From Fonticula alba ATCC 38817 (Eukaryota > Protista > Nucleariida), in NCBI GenBank assembly GCA_000388065.2, contig KB932212.1: a DNA stretch of 25,608 nucleotides. The stretch is one strand, 5' to 3'. The position numbers and the translations under genes are program-made. The stretch's first letter is position 1, and every line of letters begins with the position of its first letter. A model generated the notes under the pieces. It saw only the letters and a list, made by a program, of their open reading frames with translations, made no database searches and was not told where the DNA came from. Shown here one piece after another: positions 5,754 through 24,741 of this stretch.

Positions 5754-6598
5754 NNNNNNNNNNNNNNNNNNNNNNNNNNNNNNNNNNNNNNNNNNNNNNN
5801 NNNNNNNNNNNNNNNNNNNNNNNNNNNNNNNNNNNNNNNNNNNNNNNNNNNNNNNNNNNNNNNNNNNNNNNNNNNNNNNNNNNNNNNNNNNNNNNNNNNN
5901 NNNNNNNNNNNNNNNNNNNNNNNNNNNNNNNNNNNNNNNNNNNNNNNNNNNNNNNNNNNNNNNNNNNNNNNNNNNNNNNNNNNNNNNNNNNNNNNNNNNN
6001 NNNNNNNNNNNNNNNNNNNNNNNNNNNNNNNNNNNNNNNNNNNNNNNNNNNNNNNNNNNNNNNNNNNNNNNNNNNNNNNNNNNNNNNNNNNNNNNNNNNN
6101 NNNNNNNNNNNNNNNNNNNNNNNNNNNNNNNNNNNNNNNNNNNNNNNNNNNNNNNNNNNNNNNNNNNNNNNNNNNNNNNNNNNNNNNNNNNNNNNNNNNN
6201 NNNNNNNNNNNNNNNNNNNNNNNNNNNNNNNNNNNNNNNNNNNNNNNNNNNNNNNNNNNNNNNNNNNNNNNNNNNNNNNNNNNNNNNNNNNNNNNNNNNN
6301 NNNNNNNNNNNNNNNNNNNNNNNNNNNNNNNNNNNNNNNNNNNNNNNNNNNNNNNNNNNNNNNNNNNNNNNNNNNNNNNNNNNNNNNNNNNNNNNNNNNN
6401 NNNNNNNNNNNNNNNNNNNNNNNNNNNNNNNNNNNNNNNNNNNNNNNNNNNNNNNNNNNNNNNNNNNNNNNNNNNNNNNNNNNNNNNNNNNNNNNNNNNN
6501 NNNNNNNNNNNNNNNNNNNNNNNNNNNNNNNNNNNNNNNNNNNNNNNNNNNNNNNNNNNNNNNNNNNNNNNNNNNNNNNNNNNNNNNNNNNNNNNNNN
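5754..6598. other. Assembly gap
   Basis: Run of N. Confidence 1.
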
Positions 6599-6652: not shown

Positions 6653-6967
6653 GGGAGGGGGGGGGGGTACTTGGGGCACCCCCGTGCTGGCAGCCCCCAA
6701 GTACGGCCCCCTCCCCCCTGACACGCTCGCGCTCCGCTCCTCTCCCTCAAGAGAAGCGACCCGAAAGAACACCCCCACCCCCACACACGCCCGCACACGC
6801 CCCCCGCGCGTCGCCGATCCCCGAGACCGGACCGCCGCATCCGCGCACGCTCTCTCCCCCCCTCCCCGACACACGGCCGACGCATCGTCGTGCTCCCTGC
6901 CGCAGCAGCGTGTCACACCGGAAACACACGCAGGCACATCTCCCCCCTCCTGTCCGGCACCTTATTT

Positions 6968-7142
6968 GTGCGTCCTCCCGCCGGGCGCTGTCTGGGATCC
7001 CCCCCCCCGCACATACACCTGCCCCCTTGTCGTGTGTGCCTCTCTGACACCCCCACCACTATCACTGTCTCGTGCACACACACACGCACACGCACACGCA
7101 CACGCACACACACACACACACACGCACACGCACACGCACACG

Positions 7143-7177
<35 letters not shown>

Positions 7178-7181
7178 ACAG
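6968..7181 (+). other. Probable 5'-UTR intron of the ATP-grasp gene, containing a (CA)/(CACG) tract at 7075-7180
   Basis: GTGCGT donor at 6968 matches the donors of the coding introns. The CA tract ends in CAG at 7179-7181, 14 nt before ATG 7196. Confidence 0.55.
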
Positions 7182-7195
7182 CCCCCCCCCAAGCC

Positions 7196-10120
7196 ATGTC
7201 CCCCTCTGCTGCCATCCCCCTGAGCGCGCGCCAGCCGCCGACGGCCGAGCACCTGCCCGGCGCGGCGCCAGTCCCCGCTGACGCCCCCGGCGCCATGGTC
7301 ATCCACCCCGAGGACCCGGTCACCGCCAGCATGTTCTACTACCCGAAGGTGGTGACCAAGCAGAAGTTCCTGGACCAGGCCGAGGCCGGCCTGCCGGACG
7401 AGGCCATGATCGAGGTGCCGCGCACGCACCCGCTGGTGGTGGAGTTCCTGGGGCTGCCGGCGCGGGAGATCGCCGCCCGGTACGCCGCCCGCCATGAGGG
7501 GGTCTGCCCGGAGGAGCTCCGCCGCCGGGTGCTGGCCTACCTGCCGCGGCACTTCTGCTGGGCCGGGTCGGATCTCTTCTGCGTGGAGCACGCCCTGGAG
7601 GAGACCTCCACCACGACGGTCACCACCACGGTGGTGGCCCCGGTGGATGCCACCGACGCGGTTCCCGAGCACCTGCCGGCGGCCGATGACGGCGGCGCCA
7701 CCACCCAAACCGAGGCCTCCACCGAGACCACCAACGACCCGGCCGGCGGCATGGTCACCTCTTCGACCACGGTCCGCACGACGTCCATCGCCTCGGGCCA
7801 GGTGTCGGACCTGACCGGCGACGAGGTGGCCGCCGTGGCCCTGGCCTCGGTCGAGGGGGCCGTCTCGTCGTCGGCCTCGGCCCCGGTCCCGGCCCCGGCC
7901 CCGGCCCCGTCAGCCGGCTCCTGCGCCGGATGTGGCGGTGCCGCCTGCGATGGCGCCGGCGAGGGGCCGGTGTCGCATGCGCTCGCCAGCAAGAGCGCCA
8001 TGCCGCTGATGGCCACCACCCGCACGGTGACCGAGTGCTCGACCACGGTGGAGCTCCGCCGCGGCCGGCAGATGATCATCATCGAAACCAACTCCTGTCC
8101 CAGCGGTGTCAAGTCCATGCCGTGGGCCGTGCACGCGGGCCTGGCCGCCGCCGGGCCGGACCCGGCCACCAATGCGGCCACCCGGGCCGCCGAGCCCGCC
8201 GACGCCGCCCCCCCGGCCACCGGGCCGGATGCCATGCTCGGTGGGTACATGCGCATCGCCCGGGACACCTTCATGCCGCTGATCAAGCGCCACACGCGCC
8301 GGCATCCGGAGCTGGCCTCCGGCCGGCTGGCGGTTCTGTACGACAAGAACCCGATGGAGGCCCGGGCATATGCCCATGCCTTGGCCCGGGCCAGCGGCGA
8401 GCCGGTCCTCTGGGCCGAGTGGACCCAGCACGATGTCCCGGCCGAGGGCCCGGTGGACTTTGCCCGGAGCCCGCTGGTCCGGCGCGACGCCCAGGGGGTT
8501 ATCTGGGTGCGCGAGGGCCCGACCACTTGGCATCCCCTGCGCGCGGCCTTCCGGTATGTGACCCAGCGCCCGTGGAACCGGCTGCCCGCCACCCCGGTGG
8601 CCGGCGGGACCCTGGTCCTGAACCCGGTGCTGGCCTGCCTGGCCGGCGGCCGGAACAAGGCCATCGCCGCCTATGCCTATGGCGCCTTCAATGCCAATGA
8701 TCAGCACCGCCGGTCGGGGCTGCAAATCCGCGCCCCGGCCACCTGGCCCAGCATCACCCTGGATGAGGTGGAGATGAGGGTGCGCAATCTCCAAGGCCAC
8801 GCCGTGGTCAAGGTGCCCTACGCCAATGCCGGCCAGGGGATCTACACCATCACCAATGACGCGGACTTGCAGGCCTTCCTGGCCGAGGAGCGAGCCAAGG
8901 CCAGTGCCGCCGGCGGCCCCGGCGGCAGCTATGACCGCTATGTGGTCCAGCGCCTGATCGGCCACCGGGACTGGTCGGGGGCGCTGAGCCTGCCCCCGGC
9001 CCCGGCGGCGTCGGTGGTCCCGCCGCTGGCGACCCTGTCCACGGCCGGCGGTCCGGCCCCGGGCGCCGACGAGACCACCGCCTCGGCGTCGGGGTCCTCC
9101 TCTTCCGGGGGGGGGCTTGGCGTGGTGGCCGGTGCCGCCCCTCATGCCACGGCCCCCGGGGCTGTGCTCTCGCCGACCGGGGCCGCCGCCGCCGCCGCCG
9201 CCGCCGGGTCGGCGGCCTTCGGTGACCTGCTGCCCGGCCAGACGACGTCCCTCCTGCCCGGGGCGCCGGCCATCGTGTACCCGGGGAATGTGGAGCTGGC
9301 GGCCGATTCGCAGCAGTCGGCGGCCATGGCCGCGGCCATGGCCGCCGTCTCGGCCATCCCCACCACCACCAAGACCTCGCACTCGACCACCGTCACCCAG
9401 CAGATGGAGCGCGTGTATCACCAAAACCGCCGGTGCCTGGGGGACAATGCCGATGGCGACCCCTCCTCGGATGAGCCCTTCTATGTGGCGGACCTGCGCA
9501 TGATGGTGGCGGCGGACTTGCGGCCGCGCGGCGGCCCGGACGCCGACCCCGACGACCCCTTCACCCTGCTGGAGGATGAGGCCGCCACCGCGGCCAACCC
9601 CAACCGCATGATCTTCCGGCCGATGGCCATCTATGCCCGGCGTGCGGCGGCCCCGCTGGAGGCCAACCTGGACAAGGCCTCGGCCACCAGCTGGGACATG
9701 CTGGGCACCAACCTCAGCGAGAAGCGCCCCGATGGCACCTGGACCACGGCCACCCACCGGCTGATCACCGCCGACGAGGAGCACTTCCCCACCCTGGGCC
9801 TGGACCTGGATGACCTGATCGATGCCTTTGTCCAGACGTGCATGAGCGTGGTGGCCATCGACCAGATGGCCGATGACTTGCTGGTTCGCCCGGCCGCCGA
9901 CCAGCCGCCGCCGCCGCCGTCGCCGGCACAGCAGCACCCGTCGGGCCAGGCCGACCTATGTGGCGGTGGCCCTGCCTCGCCTCGGCCGGTCGGCCGGCCG
10001 GCCGATGCCGGCCTCGTGCAGACCGCCTTCGACCGGGAGAAGTTCAGCGAGCTGGTCAAGAATGACGAGGCCTTCATGTCGGAGGTGGCTCGCGGGGACT
10101 TCGTCAGGCCGCCGCAGTAG
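7196..10120 (+). CDS. Uncharacterised ATP-grasp amide ligase, circularly permuted motif order, single coding exon, 974 aa with long low-complexity insertions
   Basis: Open frame with strong C/G third-position bias. Motifs: WAGSDLF (D at 7571), MIIIETNSCPSG (E-x-N at 8084-8092), AVLYDKNPME, AAFRYVTQRPWNRLP, LNPVLACLAGGRNK, AVVKVPYANAGQGIYTI (K at 8810), YVVQRLIG (Q at 8948), VADLRMMV (9491-9499), SWDMLGTNLS. These match ATP-grasp lid, nucleotide-binding and metal-binding motifs. The start was placed after the CA repeat and acceptor, not at the ORF-track start 6890. Confidence 0.8.
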   Translation: MSPSAAIPLSARQPPTAEHLPGAAPVPADAPGAMVIHPEDPVTASMFYYPKVVTKQKFLDQAEAGLPDEAMIEVPRTHPLVVEFLGLPAREIAARYAARHEGVCPEELRRRVLAYLPRHFCWAGSDLFCVEHALEETSTTTVTTTVVAPVDATDAVPEHLPAADDGGATTQTEASTETTNDPAGGMVTSSTTVRTTSIASGQVSDLTGDEVAAVALASVEGAVSSSASAPVPAPAPAPSAGSCAGCGGAACDGAGEGPVSHALASKSAMPLMATTRTVTECSTTVELRRGRQMIIIETNSCPSGVKSMPWAVHAGLAAAGPDPATNAATRAAEPADAAPPATGPDAMLGGYMRIARDTFMPLIKRHTRRHPELASGRLAVLYDKNPMEARAYAHALARASGEPVLWAEWTQHDVPAEGPVDFARSPLVRRDAQGVIWVREGPTTWHPLRAAFRYVTQRPWNRLPATPVAGGTLVLNPVLACLAGGRNKAIAAYAYGAFNANDQHRRSGLQIRAPATWPSITLDEVEMRVRNLQGHAVVKVPYANAGQGIYTITNDADLQAFLAEERAKASAAGGPGGSYDRYVVQRLIGHRDWSGALSLPPAPAASVVPPLATLSTAGGPAPGADETTASASGSSSSGGGLGVVAGAAPHATAPGAVLSPTGAAAAAAAAGSAAFGDLLPGQTTSLLPGAPAIVYPGNVELAADSQQSAAMAAAMAAVSAIPTTTKTSHSTTVTQQMERVYHQNRRCLGDNADGDPSSDEPFYVADLRMMVAADLRPRGGPDADPDDPFTLLEDEAATAANPNRMIFRPMAIYARRAAAPLEANLDKASATSWDMLGTNLSEKRPDGTWTTATHRLITADEEHFPTLGLDLDDLIDAFVQTCMSVVAIDQMADDLLVRPAADQPPPPPSPAQQHPSGQADLCGGGPASPRPVGRPADAGLVQTAFDREKFSELVKNDEAFMSEVARGDFVRPPQ

Positions 10121-11217: not shown

Positions 11218-14169
11218 CTAGTCCTGCTTCGATGACGGGGCCGCGCCCCCGGTCGATGTCGGACTGCGCAGAGACTGCCGGCTGAAGATCCCCGCGTAGG
11301 GCACAAGCCCGGGGCCCGGGCCGCTGGCCGGTCGCCGGGCAAACGGCCCCGACCCGGCGTCCATCCCGCCGACGGCACTGCTGCCGCCTCCCGGGGCCAG
11401 CGGCCCGGAGGCCGACCCACTGAGCGCGAATTCCCCATGCGGGCCCAGGAGCCCACCCGTGCCGGACGACCCGGCGCCAGCACCGGACCCAGCCCCCCCG
11501 GAAAAGGCGAAGGGCTGGCCCCGGCGCCGGCCGAGCCCCGGCCGCGGGGACACCAGCGCCCCGGCCGCCGCCGGCAATCGGGTCCGCCACCAGGCGGTAT
11601 CCAGCGAGTAGGTCCGCAGGAGGTTGTCCCCCTCATCGGTGTCGCCCGGGCCATCCGGGCGCTCTTGCAACGGCGGGTACAGGGAATTCTCATCATGAAT
11701 GGAGGCCATGCTGGGGACCCGATCAATGCCGGACCCAGCCCCGGCGGCCCGGGCCACCAGCCCGCCGCCCATCGGACCCCCGGGACCATGCTCCGACAGA
11801 AGCGAATGCTGCTGCTCGAGGGCACTGGCGGCCACGGCCGCACCACCGTCACCGGCCCCGCCATCCGGCGGGCACTCGCACTCCGCGCCATCCGGCCCGG
11901 CAGGAGCCCCACATTGGGGGCACTCATCCGGCCCGGCGATCGGCGAGTCGGGCGGTGCGTGCTCCCCGACCGCGGTCTGGTGGCGCTGCTGCTGCTGCTG
12001 CTGCTGCCCGCCTGCCAGGCCGGCCGCCGGGTCCACATGAGGCACCCCCTGGATCAGCTCATACCGGCCATTGACGAGCTCCATGTGCACGATGCCGGCA
12101 TTCTTCAGCTGCCCGGCCCGGTCGAACTTTTCCACACTCCACCGGTAGTAGCGCATCAGGAAGAGACGAATGGACAGCCCGTGCGAGACAATGACAATGG
12201 TCCGCGGCCGGGCGGCCCCCCGCCGGCGCATCAGCCGATTCAAGGACTCCAGGAAGAGCGACACCCGGTCGAAGACATCGGCCCCGGACTCGCCGCCGTC
12301 CGGGAACCGGAAGAAGAACCGCCCCAGGCGGCTGCGACGCTCCCACAGGGCCCGCTGGGCCTTCTCCGACCGGGGCTGCAAATTGCCGCAATCCTGCTCC
12401 CGGAGCCGGGGGTCCTCGATGACCCGCGGCGAGAAGTCCATCCACTCGGGCGGGATCTCCTCCTGGAGAGCCTGCAGGGTTTGCTTGCAGCGCTCATAGG
12501 GGGAGGTGTAGAAAAGGAGCAGCTCATTGTGCCCGGACCCGAGGCCCAGATGCCGGCCATCGGCCGACCCGGCCGGGTGCTCCTGCTGGCGCTCATCCAT
12601 CCGGTCGTACATGCGCACAAGCCGCGTGAGCCGGGCCCCGGCCGCGCGGGCCTGCTCCCGGCCGCGCTCGGTCAGGCCGATCTGGCTGTCCGGCGTGCGG
12701 GAATACACCGACGGGTCGACATTGGCCTCGGATTCCCCATGGCGGACCAGCAAAATCCGCCGGGGGGCCGTTCGCAGGAAACGCCGGTTGTCCGCCTCCT
12801 CGATCCACCGGAGCAGCAGCGCCCCGATGGCATCGCGCAGCCGGGCCAGCAGGGCCGTCAGCAAGTCCCCCAGCCAGAGGGCCCATTGCCGCAGCAGCAG
12901 CACCGGGGCCAGCAGCAGGCGCCACAGCCCGGCCACCGTCGGCCCGGAGGCCCCGGATGGCGAGGGGCCCGGCGGCCGGGAAGCCCGGTCGAACCTCGAC
13001 CCCGGGCCCGGGGGTCCATCCGCCGGGCGCGGCGACGACAGGCACGCCTGCAGCCAGGACCCCAGGCCAAAGAGGTCGCCCAGTCTGGCGGTCGGCTCGG
13101 AGGGGGGCGGGAAGGGGCGCTTCGTCCTCGGGGCCGGCTGGGAAAGGAGATCCTGCAGCGAGGCCTCCGACCGGAGGCTGGCCGACCGGGAGGCGGGGCC
13201 CTCCGGGGTCGAGCCCCCGGCCGTCACCATCGGCAGGGTGCCGGCCGTCAGGATCTGCGACGCCGAGGGCGACGAAGAGGTGGTGGAGGCCGGCGAGAAG
13301 GGCCCGGCCAGGTGGCCTGACATGCCGGCCCCCGGGCCCGGGGCCCCCCGGCGAATGGTCACCGCCCCGGGGGAGATGACCGGCAGCGGGATGGACGGGG
13401 CCGATGCGCGGCGCTGGCGCTCCGGCGTCACTTGCAGCAGGCTGGTGAGGGACTTGCCGCGGAGGGGGGCCGACCCGGGCCCGCCGGTGGCCGAGGCCGG
13501 GAAGCCTGCCGGCCCGGGGGAGGGCTGGCGCTGGGGGCCCGAACCCCCGGGGTATGGGCCCTCCTCGGCCACCGGGGCCAGCGGCCGCAAGTCGGGCCGG
13601 CTGATGATGATGGTCGGGTTCGGGGCCGGGGGCGCCACCAGGCTGTCCAGGGTGTCTCGCGAGGAGGAGGAGGAGGAGGAGGAGGAGGAGGGGGAGGTGG
13701 TGGAGGTGGAGGCCGGGGCGGAGGAGGACACCTCAGTGCTGAGGGCCATGTGTGTCAGCCCGCCGGAGGGGTTGACCTCGATGCTGGAGGACTCGTCGTT
13801 GGACGAATCGGCCGGGCTCAGGGATGCGTCTGCCGGCTGCCCGGGGATCCGGCTCATGGTGATGAAGCGCGGGCTGTAGGGCAGCGGCCGACGACCGGCC
13901 CCGGCCGAGCTGCGTGACACATGCGATGCTGGGGCCGGTGCGGTGTGGGGATCGCCTCGCGGGAGCGCCAGCGGCTCGGCGACGCCTCCAACCGGCGTGG
14001 GGCCCTGGGTGGTGGCGGGCCCCGCATCGTCGGGGGGGCTGAGCGGCTGCTCGATGGCCTCTCGCGAGGAGACGGGCGAGATCGGGCCTGGTGCAATCAT
14101 GGGCGGTGGCGGAGCAAGTGCTGACGGTGATGACGGCGAAAGTGCATGACACTCTTCGGTGGCACCCAT
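11218..14169 (-). CDS. Histidine phosphatase superfamily branch 1 (phosphoglycerate mutase-like, Det1/AT74-like broad-range acid phosphatase), 983 aa with long disordered N- and C-termini
   Basis: RRILLVRHGESEAN (RHG at 12737-12745), LTERGREQA, FYTSPYERCKQT, DPRLREQDCGN, GRFFFRFPDGGESGADVFDRV and IVIVSHGLSIRLFLMRY (second His at 12181-12183). First plausible ATG at 14169 (MGATEECH...). The ORF track extends it to 15918 only by reading through Ns. No intron is needed. Confidence 0.85.
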   Translation of the reverse strand: MGATEECHALSPSSPSALAPPPPMIAPGPISPVSSREAIEQPLSPPDDAGPATTQGPTPVGGVAEPLALPRGDPHTAPAPASHVSRSSAGAGRRPLPYSPRFITMSRIPGQPADASLSPADSSNDESSSIEVNPSGGLTHMALSTEVSSSAPASTSTTSPSSSSSSSSSSRDTLDSLVAPPAPNPTIIISRPDLRPLAPVAEEGPYPGGSGPQRQPSPGPAGFPASATGGPGSAPLRGKSLTSLLQVTPERQRRASAPSIPLPVISPGAVTIRRGAPGPGAGMSGHLAGPFSPASTTSSSPSASQILTAGTLPMVTAGGSTPEGPASRSASLRSEASLQDLLSQPAPRTKRPFPPPSEPTARLGDLFGLGSWLQACLSSPRPADGPPGPGSRFDRASRPPGPSPSGASGPTVAGLWRLLLAPVLLLRQWALWLGDLLTALLARLRDAIGALLLRWIEEADNRRFLRTAPRRILLVRHGESEANVDPSVYSRTPDSQIGLTERGREQARAAGARLTRLVRMYDRMDERQQEHPAGSADGRHLGLGSGHNELLLFYTSPYERCKQTLQALQEEIPPEWMDFSPRVIEDPRLREQDCGNLQPRSEKAQRALWERRSRLGRFFFRFPDGGESGADVFDRVSLFLESLNRLMRRRGAARPRTIVIVSHGLSIRLFLMRYYRWSVEKFDRAGQLKNAGIVHMELVNGRYELIQGVPHVDPAAGLAGGQQQQQQQRHQTAVGEHAPPDSPIAGPDECPQCGAPAGPDGAECECPPDGGAGDGGAAVAASALEQQHSLLSEHGPGGPMGGGLVARAAGAGSGIDRVPSMASIHDENSLYPPLQERPDGPGDTDEGDNLLRTYSLDTAWWRTRLPAAAGALVSPRPGLGRRRGQPFAFSGGAGSGAGAGSSGTGGLLGPHGEFALSGSASGPLAPGGGSSAVGGMDAGSGPFARRPASGPGPGLVPYAGIFSRQSLRSPTSTGGAAPSSKQD

Positions 14170-14361
14170 GCTGTGTGGGAGCGCACGAGAGAGGGAGACC
14201 GAGAGAGAGAGAGAGAGGGAGGGGGGGGAGGCGGCAGGAGGAGGGAAGGGAGGGAAGACGGAGGGAGGGAAGCGGGGGCAGGGATATGCTTGGCCGATCG
14301 GCGAGGCGGGCAGGGGGGGGGGGGGGGTGCCTGCGGGAGGCATGCTCCCAGCCCGGGGGCG

Positions 14362-14895
14362 NNNNNNNNNNNNNNNNNNNNNNNNNNNNNNNNNNNNNNN
14401 NNNNNNNNNNNNNNNNNNNNNNNNNNNNNNNNNNNNNNNNNNNNNNNNNNNNNNNNNNNNNNNNNNNNNNNNNNNNNNNNNNNNNNNNNNNNNNNNNNNN
14501 NNNNNNNNNNNNNNNNNNNNNNNNNNNNNNNNNNNNNNNNNNNNNNNNNNNNNNNNNNNNNNNNNNNNNNNNNNNNNNNNNNNNNNNNNNNNNNNNNNNN
14601 NNNNNNNNNNNNNNNNNNNNNNNNNNNNNNNNNNNNNNNNNNNNNNNNNNNNNNNNNNNNNNNNNNNNNNNNNNNNNNNNNNNNNNNNNNNNNNNNNNNN
14701 NNNNNNNNNNNNNNNNNNNNNNNNNNNNNNNNNNNNNNNNNNNNNNNNNNNNNNNNNNNNNNNNNNNNNNNNNNNNNNNNNNNNNNNNNNNNNNNNNNNN
14801 NNNNNNNNNNNNNNNNNNNNNNNNNNNNNNNNNNNNNNNNNNNNNNNNNNNNNNNNNNNNNNNNNNNNNNNNNNNNNNNNNNNNNNNNNNNNNNN
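14362..14895. other. Assembly gap
   Basis: Run of N, followed on the right by a G homopolymer. Confidence 1.
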
Positions 14896-16534
14896 NGGGG
14901 GGGGGGGGGATGCCCGCCCGCCGTCCCCTGGAACTCGATCATCCCCAGGCCGACCGGGACGGAACTGTACCTGGGAAGTAGCCCACCCCCCCCAGGCTGG
15001 GACAGCGTGAACATAAACTACCCCCCCCATGCTCGGCGCCTCCGCCCGCGAGGGGTGGGGATAGGCCGGCGGCCAGCCGGCTGGAGCGCATCTTTTGGCA
15101 GGTCTTTCCGGGGCGCACGCGCCGCAGGGAGGGCGGCTGGACATATACTGGGTACAACAGCCCCCCCCCCCCCCCGGGCAAGGGGCGCCTGCACCTGGTG
15201 GGGGAGAGCCCCGGGCACCGTACTCACCAACGGCAGGGGGGGGAGAGGGGCGGGAGCCGCGCGCACGCGTTCCTGGTGCAATGCCACACCGAGAAGACGG
15301 CCTCCGCCGTATGCGACGAGACGCGCTTGGCCGAAGAGACGGCGAGGGCCGCCGGCCCACCCCTGGATAGACGAGCCAGCGGGGCATCCCCCGGGCTTTT
15401 GGCTGCCTTCCCCGAAGAGAGGGGCCGTGCCAGGGGGGTGGCAGCCCTCGCCGGGGAGGAAGTCGCGCGTCGGGCCGCGAAGCCTGGGCGAGATCCTCCG
15501 CGTCCCCCGCGCGCATCCCCGAGTCCGGGGGCATGTGCCCAGGCGAGGGGAGACAGACACAGGGGCTGAGAGCTGGCCGACGCCTGGCCGGCGATCCCGA
15601 CGGATTGCCGCACTTTGACATTCGGGCGTGATCCTCCCCGGGGCTGGTCAGCCGCGGCGTGTTCACGTGCGGGGTTCTCGGTTTCACGCCGGCCGTGCGC
15701 GTCGCCGCCCCCGCCGACGAGGAAACAAACTCCAGGGTGAGGCACACGCATCGCCTGGCGCCCCGTAGCCCGGCCCCGGCGGCTGGCGCACACCGCACCC
15801 GCCGGGCGTTAAGGCGTCCGCGGGGCGAACAACGCACGGGCTCCGCCCCCCACGACCAAGTGCCGCAGGGGGGGGGGGGGGGGGGGGGAGGAAGCAGAGG
15901 CCGGGCCAGTGCCCGCACCGCGCTGCCCCCACCGCTGCCGCCGACACAGCCTTCCTCGCGTGCTGGGCCAGCTTAGCAGAGCAAGGGCGTTGGAAGGCCG
16001 ATCATTCAATTAACGTGCCACCTACTCTGTCCGGCCGGCTGGCGCGTATGCGCGCGCGACACGCAAGTGCCTTGCTTTGGCGGCTGCCGGCCCGGCCGGG
16101 GGGGGGGGGCGAGGCTCTGGCGCCCGCGAAAAAGGCAGCGGCAGTCGGGGGCGGCGGCAGCGCGCGCGCGCGCGCGTCAATGTTTTCATGCTTATGCCCC
16201 CGAGCCGAGGGTCCGGGGGGGGGGGGCTAGTAGGGCGGCAGACCGGGTCGGGTGACCGCTCACGCTTTGTGCCCAGCCAAGGGCCAACTGGATCGCCCAG
16301 GCCCAGTCGGGGTAGAGGGGGGGGGGGGGGAAACGCATCGAGTCCGCCTTCACGCCTGCAAGCATGCCGCGGGTGCATGCGCACCCGGAAGAGACCCGCG
16401 GAGGAGCGCACGGCCAAGAAACAAGGGGCGCCAGGCCACTCCTGATGGCCGGACGGCCCGCCCGCACCCCCTGAGTGAAGATCCCGCCCCCCCCCCCCCC
16501 CCCCCCTCTTCTCCCCCTCCTTTCCTTTCTCTAA

Positions 16535-17763
16535 ATGACCATGTCCGTCGAGCAGAAGGCCACCAACATCACCTGGCACGCCGGCGAGTTCACCCACGCC
16601 GAGCGCTCTGCCCTCCTTGGCCAGAAGGTGCGCCCTCCCCCCTCCCCTCTTCTGGCTCGACACCCCCGCGCGCCCAAGGGTCGCCCTACTAACCTCAACC
16701 TTCCCCCTCCCCCGCGGCCATGTGACACAATGCACACACACACACACGCACACACACGTACCTTATCAACGTGCAGGGCCTCACCATCTGGCTCACCGGC
16801 CTCTCCGCCTCCGGCAAGTCCACCATCGGCGTCGCCCTCGAGCAGACCCTCCTCAACAACTGTGCGCAGCCGCCCCGCACCCCTCTCCCGGCTTTGACCC
16901 ACACATCAGGCTCTCGCCCGCCTCGCCTCCTGCCCATATGCTCACACACACACACACACACACACACAGCCGTCAACGCCTACCGCCTGGACGGCGACAA
17001 CATCCGCTTCGGCCTGAACAAGAACCTCGGCTTCTCGGACGCCGACCGCCAGGAGAACATCCGCCGCGTGGCCGAGGTTGCCAAGCTCTTCGCCGACGCC
17101 TGCACCATCACCATCGCCTCCTTCATCTCCCCCTTCAAGGCTGACCGCGATGCCGTGCGCGCCCTGCACGAGGCCGCCAACCTGCCCTTCATCGAGATCT
17201 ACGTCGACGCCTCCCTCGACACCCTGAAGGAGCGCGACCCCAAGGGCCTCTACAAGAAGGCCCTGGCTGGTGAGATCAAGGGTACGTCAACAAGCCCTCC
17301 CCGTCCCCGCCTCTTCCCCCTTCCCCATGGGGGTGTATCCCGGGTTTCTGACTGCTCGGCTGCTCGGCTGCTGCCCCTTCCCCCACGCCTCGGCCATGCG
17401 CACCAGACTTCACTGGCATCTCCTCTCCCTATGAGGCCCCGGAGAAGCCGGAGCTGCACCTCAAGACCGACGCCTCGTCCGTCGAGGAGTGTGTCCAGGT
17501 ACGCGTCGCGCCGAGTGGCGCAAGGCTCTTTCGCCCATGTATCTGTGTGCATTTTTGGCCCCGCCCCCTCTCCCTCCCCCCTCCTCCTCCTCCTCCTCCT
17601 CCTCCTCCTCCTCCTCTCGAGGAAGGGCGAGACACCGCGAGATCTCCCCGTGAAACTGGCCGTCTCCTGACACCCGAGAAAAAAAAACACCCGTGTGCGT
17701 GCGTAGGCCATCCTGGACTACCTCCGCGAGAAGGACCTCCTCCCCAACAAGACCTCTGCCTGA
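16535..17763 (+). CDS. MET14: Adenylyl-sulfate (APS) kinase, standalone fungal type; exons 16535-16627, 16777-16861, 16970-17281, 17407-17498, 17707-17763; 212 aa
   Basis: The spliced product has ATNITWH, the P-loop [84 protein letters not shown]. All four introns have GT(A/G)CG(C/T) donors and AG acceptors with compatible phases. Confidence 0.96.
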
Positions 17764-21235: not shown

Positions 21236-22851
21236 TTAGGAGGAGGCCTCGGTGACCTCGGTGATCTTGCCCTCCTCCTTGGGGGCAACCTGATCAAGGG
21301 GCTTCATGGCCGGGAACAGGAGGACCTCCTACGAGAGAGATAGAGAGAGAGAGAGGGGGGGGGGAGAGGAGGGGGGAGGCCAAGTGCCCGGGGCAGTCGG
21401 TATGCGCGCATGTGTGTGAGCAGAGGGGGGAAAAAGAAAAAAAGCACAAAGAAAGTCATCCACCAGCAGGCACGGGGGACACGCGACGACACGGGCATAA
21501 ATGCTGGAAGCCACACACACACACACACACACGTGCCGCCGCTGCGCCACCCCACCTTTTTGAGACGCACCTTGATGTTGTTGGAGTCAGTCAGGAACAT
21601 GACCAGGCGGTCGACACCGAGACCCCAGCCACCGGTGGGCGGCAGGCCATACTCCAGGGCAGTGCAGAAGCCCTCATCCGGGACCTGGGCCTCATCATCA
21701 CCGGCGTCCTTGTCCTTGGCCTGGTCGGCGAAGCGCTGGCGCTGGACAGCCGGGTCGTTGAGCTCGGTGTAGGCATTGCAGATCTCCTTCTGGCAAACGA
21801 AGAGCTCGAAGCGCTCAGTGGCCCCGGGCATGGACCGGTGCTCCTTGGCCAGGGGGGACATGAGCACCGGGTGGTCGGTGATGAAGGTGGGGTTGTCGCA
21901 CTGGACCTCGAGGAAGTGCCCGACCAGCTTGTCCAGCAGACGGGCGCCGGTGCGCGGAGCCGAGCAATCGATGCCGTACTTGACACAGGCCTCATCCAGG
22001 AAGGCGGTGGCCTCGTCGGTGCCCAGCTCCAGGGCAGTGGGGAAGGGCCGGCCAAGGTCCACATGCTTGGCCAGCTCGTCCATCATGGACAGACGGCGGA
22101 AGGGCGGGGTGAAGTCCACGACCTTCTTCTCGCCATCCGGGCCATCCGGATGGTAGGTCAGGGTGTAGGACCCGTTGATCTCGAGGACCAGCTTGGAAAT
22201 CAGCTCCTCGGTGAGGTTGATCAGATCATGGTAATCGGCGTAGGCCATGTAGAACTCGCAGGTGGTGAACTCCGGGTTGTGGGTCAGGTCGATGCCCTCG
22301 TTGCGGAACTGACGGCCGAGCTCGTACACCCGGTCCAGACCACCGATGACCAGCTGCTTGAGGAACAGCTCCGGGGCAATGCGCATGAACAGGTCCATGT
22401 TCAGGGCATTGTGGTGGGTGACGAAGGGCTTGGCCGTGGCACCGCCGGCGATCATGTTCATCATGGGGGTCTCCACCTCGAGGAAGCCCATGTTGTTGAG
22501 GAAGTTGCGCACGAAGTTGATGGTCTTCGAGCGGGTGATGAACTTCTGCCGGGTGGCATCGCGCATGATCAGGTCCAGGTAGCGCTGGCGGTAGCGCAGC
22601 TCCTGGTCCTTCAGGCCGAAGTGGGCCACCGGCAGGACGTGCAGGCAGGGCGACAGCAGGGTGATCTCCCGGGGGAAGATGGACAGCTCGCCCTTCTTGG
22701 ACTTGCCGGGGTAGCCGCGGACACCGACGATGTCACCACGACGGAGGACACCGTGGATCTTCTTGAAGTCGCCCTCGGTGAGGTCCCTGGCAAGTGGGTG
22801 AAGGGGGAGGAGGGGGAGTCAGGAAGGAGTAGAGAAGGGGAGACAGGGTCC

Positions 22852-24451: not shown

Positions 24452-24741
24452 NNNNNNNNNNNNNNNNNNNNNNNNNNNNNNNNNNNNNNNNNNNNNNNNN
24501 NNNNNNNNNNNNNNNNNNNNNNNNNNNNNNNNNNNNNNNNNNNNNNNNNNNNNNNNNNNNNNNNNNNNNNNNNNNNNNNNNNNNNNNNNNNNNNNNNNNN
24601 NNNNNNNNNNNNNNNNNNNNNNNNNNNNNNNNNNNNNNNNNNNNNNNNNNNNNNNNNNNNNNNNNNNNNNNNNNNNNNNNNNNNNNNNNNNNNNNNNNNN
24701 NNNNNNNNNNNNNNNNNNNNNNNNNNNNNNNNNNNNNNNNN
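24452..24741. other. Assembly gap
   Basis: Run of N between a G run and a C run. Confidence 1.

Follow-up and report, generated by a model that had tools for sequence, protein, structure and literature searches.

A Fonticula alba gene for a putative circularly permuted ATP-grasp ligase belongs to an unnamed, mostly bacterial family with a conserved zinc deacylase partner

The ATP-grasp superfamily carries out ATP-dependent ligation via an acyl-phosphate. In canonical members of the RimK or D-Ala-D-Ala-ligase type, motifs run in the order K-P..G-x-G, Q/E, D-x-R and only then D...E-x-N, while ligases of permuted topology make central metabolites (glutathione, trypanothione) and natural products (E-64). 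The permuted CP_ATPgrasp families are associated with alpha-E and transglutaminase genes. Cp1B (9cjn), from the fungal E-64 pathway, couples a dicarboxylic acid with an L-amino acid; it is a permuted ATP-grasp enzyme without a Pfam match, carries D141, E163 and N165 in its N-terminal part, and is encoded in a cluster that also holds a 2-oxoglutarate (2OG) oxygenase and a pyridoxal-phosphate (PLP) decarboxylase (PMC12568646). Here we describe a 974-residue protein encoded in a 25,608-nucleotide stretch (the window) of contig KB932212.1 of Fonticula alba ATCC 38817 (assembly GCA_000388065.2). We consider it to be, with a probability of about 0.78, an active carboxylate-amine ligase with the permuted topology of eukaryotic glutathione synthetase (GS) and of glutathionylspermidine synthetase (GspS), paired with a hydrolase of the small amide that it makes.

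We modeled a compact homologue, P0003, a 537-residue protein from a Polyangia metagenome-assembled genome that is 46% identical to the Fonticula protein in the family alignment. Folded with that alignment, it gave a confident model (pLDDT 86.7, pTM 0.87) whose top Foldseek matches in the PDB were circularly permuted ATP-grasp ligases: a putative gamma-glutamylcysteine synthetase of Methylobacillus flagellatus (3k1t, E 2.6e-9), a putative glutathionylspermidine synthase (Mfla_0391; 3n6x, 7.8e-8), E. coli GspS (2io7, 8.7e-8), yeast GS (1m0w, 2e-7) and Cp1B (9cjn, 2.9e-7), followed by YgiC/YjfC, trypanothione synthetase and human and plant GS. The permuted enzymes align from residue ~58 on, while LysX, RimK and Ddl cover just 184-495 with their own residues 1 to ~230-250, an alignment that presumably ends before the place of their own D/E-x-N segment. 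A model of the Fonticula protein itself (pLDDT 65.6 overall, 86-97 in the core blocks) had GS and homoglutathione synthetase as top Foldseek matches (~2e-5). Here GS, GspS and YgiC/YjfC align from residues 15-43 onwards, and canonical chains cover 374-890 with their own residues 1-250, or 376-890 with residues 1-230; the first residue of LysX, ArgX, RimK and Ddl falls on model residues 374-377. The motifs follow the order D126, E297-N299, K539, Q585, D766, so that the metal-binding hairpin lies N-terminal to the pre-ATP-grasp domain. The models thus place the protein within the three-domain ATP-grasp fold, and a circularly permuted topology of the GS/GspS type is supported because motif order and the two structural comparisons agree. 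The first-pass annotation had proposed such a permuted enzyme from the sequence, and its proposal is borne out by motif order, by residue conservation and by both models, in which AlphaFold and Foldseek recovered a GS/GspS-like ATP-grasp topology.

Conservation across the family is concentrated in the predicted active site (Table 1). Among 35 aligned sequences, including that of Fonticula, the invariant residues are E297, T298, N299, S300, S303, G304 and K306 around the E-x-N motif; R453-Q457 and C481-K488 (CLAGGRNK); K539, P541, Y542, N544, G546 and G548 of the lid; and Q585, R815, T838, N839, R855 and D872. D126, D766 and R768 are at least 90% conserved. The strand bearing D126 (model residues 122-132, pLDDT 93) has a W-x-G-x-D-x-F motif that recurs in the family, and D126 is the predicted counterpart of the Asp that canonical ATP-grasps carry ahead of E-x-N at their C-terminus; the IETNSCPSG segment has a pLDDT of 91. 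Of 255 family sequences and fragments, 120 contain RYVTQRPW and 161 CLAGGRNK; both blocks may bind substrate or phosphate. The hinge pattern [FY][IV][VI]Q is found in 185 of the 255, its Gln being predicted to contact adenine, and GTNLS in 169; ADLRMM forms strand 765-773 of the model. In the YARRA...GTNLS block we see the equivalent of the R...N-x-x-GG substrate/phosphate block known from RimK/GshB-type ligases. The ATP-grasp residue set (Lys, Gly-rich loop, hinge Gln, Asp...Glu-x-Asn) is present and its motifs recur across the 255 sequences. Given their conservation in the 35 homologues, the motifs of the Fonticula protein are not due to chance. Because its catalytic residues are invariant or at least 90% conserved, the Fonticula ligase is probably active. 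Every motif position reported by the first-pass annotation proved exact. The Cys next to E-x-N on which it remarked is common in the family but not universal: among the 125 family sequences and fragments in which E-[ST]-N can be located, 86 have ETNSCPSG and 16 have ETNSSPSG. Since Ser replaces Cys in ~13% of motif-bearing members, the Cys is unlikely to be a catalytic thiol.

Sequence comparison did not place the protein in a described family. The Fonticula protein had no match in Pfam, NCBIfam or PDB sequences at E up to 1 or 10. When the 35 members were scanned singly, sub-threshold matches to canonical models alone appeared (RimK 1.5e-3, YheCD 1.2e-3, ATP-grasp 0.019). In homologue P0012, the RimK and YheCD matches (E ~1e-3) span residues 329-448 and 332-399, which, judged from their position in the family alignment, would cover the region from K-loop to hinge. 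Membership in TTL/TTLL (PF03133) or RimK (PF08443) was rejected: no match exceeded the curated cut-off (the best RimK score, in one homologue, was 18.6 against 21 bits) and the topology is permuted. Eukaryotic GS (PF03917/PF03199) had no Pfam match at E up to 1, and a separate PF03917 gene lies on another Fonticula contig (C6); the earlier exclusion of GS and TTL/TTLL holds. GspS (PF03738) and CP_ATPgrasp_1/2 (PF04174, PF14403) were likewise without Pfam matches, and instead of alpha-E or transglutaminase genes the ligase has genes for a GshB-like ligase and an AstE-like deacylase beside it. The family also differs from its structural neighbors in detail. Aligned structurally with eukaryotic GS and homoglutathione synthetase (2hgs, 1m0w, 3kal), it shows ~11-14% identity. 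Compared with GspS, trypanothione synthetase and YgiC/YjfC (2io7, 2vps, 7uk6, 7uk8), it differs in its hydrolase partner, which is a separately encoded zinc enzyme of the AstE/AspA type rather than a fused amidase.

The ligase family is unnamed, mostly bacterial and without a Pfam or NCBIfam profile. A profile search of 1.84 billion representative sequences yielded 953 clusters with E-values no higher than 1e-3; 331 of these reach 1e-30. At least 583 loci lie in bacterial and archaeal species genomes, mostly in Saprospiraceae/Lewinellaceae (Bacteroidota) and Myxococcota. In the ESM Atlas the family appears as clusters of 'hypothetical protein' (up to 699 members) that share no Pfam family, and a literature search gave no match for the family, its locus tags or the combination of genes in its operon. 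The first-pass annotation was right to call the ligase uncharacterized, but its family is not specific to eukaryotes; the bacterial gene neighborhoods to which it pointed revealed a conserved operon. Given ~950 clusters, strict active-site motifs, no profile or paper and a conserved three-gene operon, the product of the family is very likely an unrecognized metabolite or modification.

To define this operon, we clustered the open reading frames of 80 bacterial loci, in 73 of which the ligase frame itself was recognized. The genes lie on one strand in the order ligase, GshB-like, AstE/AspA-like. The second gene, downstream of the ligase in 47 of 73 loci, encodes an ATP-grasp protein of ~336 residues (PF02955, 1.3e-29) that reaches 140 bits against the 272-bit GshB equivalog (glutathione-synthase) cut-off and scores with RimK-family models; comparison of its alignment with the ligase family profile by hhalign gave probabilities below 1%. 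The third, downstream in 52 of 73 loci, encodes a zinc deacylase of ~327 residues (PF24827, 1.1e-33) whose best sub-threshold match is DoeB and whose best families are DoeB, AstE and aspartoacylase. It is present in 36 of the 48 Bacteroidota loci with at least 2.5 kb of downstream sequence, and in Myxococcota it also adjoins the ligase, sometimes without a second ligase. A zinc deacylase is thus a conserved partner of the ligase and a second ligase a frequent one, a context that narrows the options for the substrate of the ligase. At two loci (L057, L060), the ligase and GshB-like genes are separated by genes for an Arg/Orn decarboxylase, an agmatinase-family protein and a deoxyhypusine-synthase-like protein, and polyamine genes flank the operon in ~10 further loci. 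A minority of loci have still other neighbors: MscS channels in 15, a SET-domain protein in 9 and a 2OG-Fe(II) oxygenase in 7.

Some of these neighbors would suit a ligase that tags proteins or peptides, as RimK, TTL/TTLL and bacterial CP-ATP-grasp systems do, with the M14-like AstE/AspA protein as a de-tagging carboxypeptidase. The second ligase of the operon scores with RimK-family models, the neighbor in Naegleria is a RimK-type ligase, the SET-domain and oxygenase genes sit directly upstream on the same strand and encode typical protein modifiers, and some AstE-like relatives are named 'peptidase M14' by their sources. We nevertheless regard tagging as unlikely. No conserved gene for a small protein or peptide substrate was seen in the neighborhoods; the closest structures (3k1t, GS, GspS, YgiC/YjfC, Cp1B) are all small-molecule enzymes, as are the deacylases that form the best families of the partner hydrolase; and polyamine genes stand inside the operon in some loci.

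A different proposal follows from 3k1t, the nearest structural and language-model neighbor of the family, which is probably a member of Pfam PF08886 (GshA)/TIGR02049, in agreement with the ESM Atlas. The ligase could be a divergent glutamate-cysteine ligase (GCL) of this type that, with the GshB-like neighbor, makes glutathione or a close thiol analogue. We consider this improbable, more so than tagging. The likeness is confined to structure and language model: there is no detectable sequence relation to 3k1t, PF08886/TIGR02049 matched neither the Fonticula protein nor any of the 35 homologues, and PF08886 was above cut-off in none of five carrier genomes. A search for PF08886 members in 301 genomes of one phylum, evidently the wrong one, had no match either. 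Unlike 3k1t, the family has its own signature motifs (RYVTQRPW, CLAGGRNK, GTNLS) and a constant AstE/AspA-type deacylase partner, and its host organisms possess ordinary GCL and GS of their own. Fonticula has a canonical GCL (PF03074, 1.3e-79) and GS (PF03917, four exon matches, G000:C6:2039688-2041956) elsewhere in its genome. Two Myxococcota carriers that we checked have GCS2 and a strong gshB apart from the ligase, which there is not beside a GshB-like gene, and the bit score of the operon's GshB-like protein is far under the glutathione-synthase cut-off. A housekeeping glutathione pathway is ruled out by the separate GCL/GS genes of Fonticula, the GCS2/gshB genes of the two Myxococcota carriers and the missing PF08886 match.

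The partner deacylase is also encoded in Fonticula. Its orthologue lies on another contig (G000:C8:124405-125486; L081 1501-2582), is 52-54% identical to the operon deacylase and is free of stops; ~143 nt of CT/GC-rich sequence split the gene into two exons. Homology sets in before the earliest start codon that the open frame offers, so there may be another exon on the 5' side. The closest relatives of the Fonticula deacylase (exon 1 searched) are chytrid, kickxellomycete and mortierellomycete proteins at 63-70% identity, then those of Saprospiraceae, and the fungal phyla that bear the deacylase overlap those that bear the ligase. Fonticula thereby gains one more gene pair common to bacteria and early fungi. 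Searches of its genome with PF02955, PF08443 and the bacterial GshB-like protein found no second ligase of the operon type, and the bacterial SET neighbor had no match there. A 664-residue open frame elsewhere (G000:C4:1444489-1446480; L096 331-2322) contains a Ddl-like ATP-grasp domain (PF07478, 2.5e-15). In Naegleria fowleri (L087 1180-10586), the next gene downstream of the ligase, in the same orientation, is the RimK-type ATP-grasp gene, which is not orthologous to the bacterial GshB-like gene, and upstream of the ligase lies a divergently oriented run of ABC exporter genes; a paralogue (second 90% cluster) lies on another contig. This bacterial-style cluster may reflect gene transfer. The ligase neighborhoods of Podila, Rotaria and two metagenomic contigs were uninformative.

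The Fonticula ligase gene is a complete single exon. The mechanically defined open frame runs from 6890 to 10120 (+), with the first ATG at 7196, 974 codons and a stop at 10118-10120. Its start at 6890 and the mostly Thr-His translation of 6890-7195, a (CA)n repeat, are explained by (CA)n microsatellites, which lie at 7105-7166, immediately upstream of the start codon. The exact 974-residue product from the ATG at 7196 is found in the database. A profile of the 35 homologues matches the frame (G000:C12:611312-614143) at E 8e-171 with zero internal stops and shows the ligase to be single-copy in the Fonticula genome. Compared with homologues, the protein has five low-complexity inserts (approximately residues 131-282, 311-342, 595-755, 772-805 and 898-940). 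Third-position GC (GC3) is 0.86-1.00 in every 50-codon window, in the inserts (0.90-0.98 in insert 1, 0.86-0.96 in insert 3) as in the conserved blocks; every conserved block lies in one frame; and the hexamer GTRCGY occurs three times, each time within a conserved block and at none of the insert borders. This shows that the inserts are translated, and hidden introns are ruled out by the uniform GC3 and the missing splice-like hexamers at the borders. AlphaFold pLDDT is below 50 over most of the insert length (residues 198-272 of insert 1, 596-708 and 731-758 of insert 3, and 912-940 of insert 5), and we read the five inserts as disordered decorations of the Fonticula copy. The insertions to which the first-pass annotation referred are real; removing them, as it advised, proved unnecessary for recognizing the fold, which the model of the intact protein shows.

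An insert of another kind is seen in P0015, a homologue from a JGI metagenome, where ~540 residues (~106-645) lie precisely between ETN and SCPSG. It begins Cys-Leu-Asp-Glu-Asn-Met, ends Val-Gly-Asn before Ser, has a middle of homing-endonuclease size and is without any Pfam match; named from its junction residues alone, it looks like an intein. Inteins typically occupy active sites, and such a position would fit the SCPSG loop being the most constrained site.

Inserts of this extent raise the question of whether the Fonticula copy still works. It could be dead, inactivated by its inserts, or the family could be a non-ligase ATP-grasp such as a synapsin-like nucleotide-binding scaffold or a kinase. 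We think this highly improbable, the least probable of the alternatives considered here. The Fonticula protein keeps all invariant family residues, its GC3 and intact 974-codon frame indicate a gene under selection, its core is modeled at pLDDT 86-97 and its partner deacylase is intact too.

We therefore return to an active amide-forming ligase, for which the established chemistry of the ATP-grasp superfamily suggests an acyl-phosphate mechanism. ATP would be clasped between the lid domain (K539, the Gly-rich loop 544-548 and Q585) and the C-domain, with D126, E297 and N299, on the N-terminal hairpin that structurally completes the C-domain, holding Mg2+ ions. The substrate carboxylate would be phosphorylated to an acyl-phosphate, on which an amine attacks to give the amide, ADP and Pi. 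The amide formed would be small and of the N-acyl or gamma-glutamyl type, perhaps a conjugate of an amino acid or a polyamine, and the AstE/AspA-type deacylase would hydrolyze it. The pairing of synthetase and hydrolase is suggested by the conserved partners, a zinc deacylase (also in Fonticula) and, in bacteria, a GshB-like ligase; we infer activity, deacylase action on the product and substrate class by analogy with the synthetase/amidase GspS and with Cp1B. Like Cp1B, the ligase is a Pfam-less permuted ATP-grasp with N-terminal Asp/Glu-x-Asn and with a 2OG oxygenase or a decarboxylase nearby. It differs in showing no sequence similarity to Cp1B and in having these neighbors in a minority of loci; the second amide bond of E-64 is made by an ANL enzyme, whereas the ligase operon has a GshB-like ligase, and no deacylase partner is described in the E-64 system.

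Several points weigh against this interpretation. The profile of 35 homologues matched no PDB chain, the family has no significant sequence-profile tie to any characterized ligase, and catalysis is a prediction for every one of its members. The Fonticula protein is a long branch with a 152-residue insert inside the catalytic hairpin, so that its activity may have been lost or changed. Polyamine genes are found in just ~12 of 68 Bacteroidota loci, to which shared ancestry of close genomes may contribute, and the SET-domain and 2OG-oxygenase neighbors fit a role in protein modification equally. In eukaryotes, the partnership is one of co-presence in Fonticula and phylum-level overlap in fungi, not a genome-by-genome association.

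What the amide might be for is a more tentative matter. Ligase and deacylase could make and break a gamma-glutamyl, dicarboxylate or polyamine conjugate that serves as an osmolyte, buffer or store common to Saprospiraceae, Myxococcota and scattered eukaryotes, a possibility that we hold doubtful. If this possibility is true, an entire, widely distributed metabolite pathway would have been overlooked so far. The compact bacterial members and their operon offer a directly testable route to the product of the ligase.

Table 1. Features of the Fonticula ligase gene, in positions of the window.
Feature	Position	Strand	Conservation or basis
Complete single-exon coding sequence, circularly permuted ATP-grasp ligase (predicted), 974 aa + stop	7196..10120	+	Open frame, GC3 ~0.9 throughout
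WAGSDLF strand with D126 (codon 7571), first predicted Mg2+ ligand	7559..7579	+	D126 at least 90% conserved
Insert 1, ~152 aa, Thr/Ala/Ser-rich, turn of the D...E-x-N hairpin	7586..8041	+	Absent from all aligned homologues
IETNSCPSG, E297-x-N299 predicted Mg2+/ATP motif (8084-8092) and S-C-P-S-G loop	8081..8107	+	E, T, N, S, S, G invariant (n = 35)
Insert 2, ~32 aa, Ala/Pro-rich	8126..8221	+	Gap in all homologues
Pre-ATP-grasp (Rossmann-like) N-domain, starting with RLAVLYDKNPME (8324-8359)	8324..8620	+	Structural alignment
Signature blocks RYVTQRPW and CLAGGRNK (Gly-rich, Arg/Lys-bearing)	8552..8659	+	Invariant in 35 sequences
VVKVPYANAGQG, predicted ATP-binding Lys K539 (8810) and Gly-rich lid loop	8804..8839	+	K539, P541, Y542, N544, G546, G548 invariant
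YVVQ hinge strand, Q585 (8948)	8939..8950	+	Q585 invariant
Insert 3, Ala/Ser/Gly/Pro low complexity, ~130 + 22 aa around a degenerate H-x-x-T block	8978..9460	+	Gap in homologues
ADLRMM strand, D766-x-R768 (D at 9491)	9488..9505	+	D766, R768 at least 90% conserved
YARRA ... GTNLS block	9632..9718	+	R815, T838, N839, L840 invariant
Insert 5, ~43 aa, Pro-rich, preceding the last two helices	9887..10015	+	Gap in homologues

By source name, eukaryotic carriers of the family include ferns, lycophytes, mosses, Marchantia, conifers and Closterium, then Cafeteria, Reticulomyxa and Naegleria fowleri (two copies), fungi (Podila, Ramicandelaber, Scutellospora) and animals (Rotaria, Trichinella, Trichuris and Branchiostoma, the last with several paralogues). 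Angiosperm and vertebrate names are absent from the source-named sequences, which is not a systematic test; if the absence from vertebrates holds in a systematic survey, the pathway would be of practical interest, as the parasites Naegleria fowleri, Trichinella and Trichuris carry it. In a quick tree, eukaryotes fall into at least three groups mixed with Myxococcota, and Fonticula joins Trichinellida by a flagged long-branch join; given the weak backbone and this long branch, the tree does not decide between descent and transfer. Podila verticillata has two ligase paralogues (611 and 612 residues) ~8 kb apart (L083 10001-13062 and 21083-23062). A 1409-residue protein annotated in Trichinella pseudospiralis (P0057) combines the ligase domain (881-1365) with a CTF18/RFC-like AAA+ protein; probably two genes were merged in the model and the fusion is not real. 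The locus tag of the Marchantia polymorpha copy (P0021, Mp_Vg00360) suggests a position on the male (V) sex chromosome.

The window, with a G+C content of 64-80% in 1-kb segments free of N runs, contains (CA)n microsatellites and N gaps (923-1271, 5754-6598, 14362-14896 and 24452-24741). Judged by eye from unscanned translations, the neighbors of the ligase gene there seem unrelated to it: a long protein of low complexity that contains a histidine-phosphatase (PGAM-like) domain at 11218-15918 (-), an adenylyl-sulfate kinase with introns at 16771-17670 (+) and a lysyl-tRNA synthetase at 21304-22629 (-).

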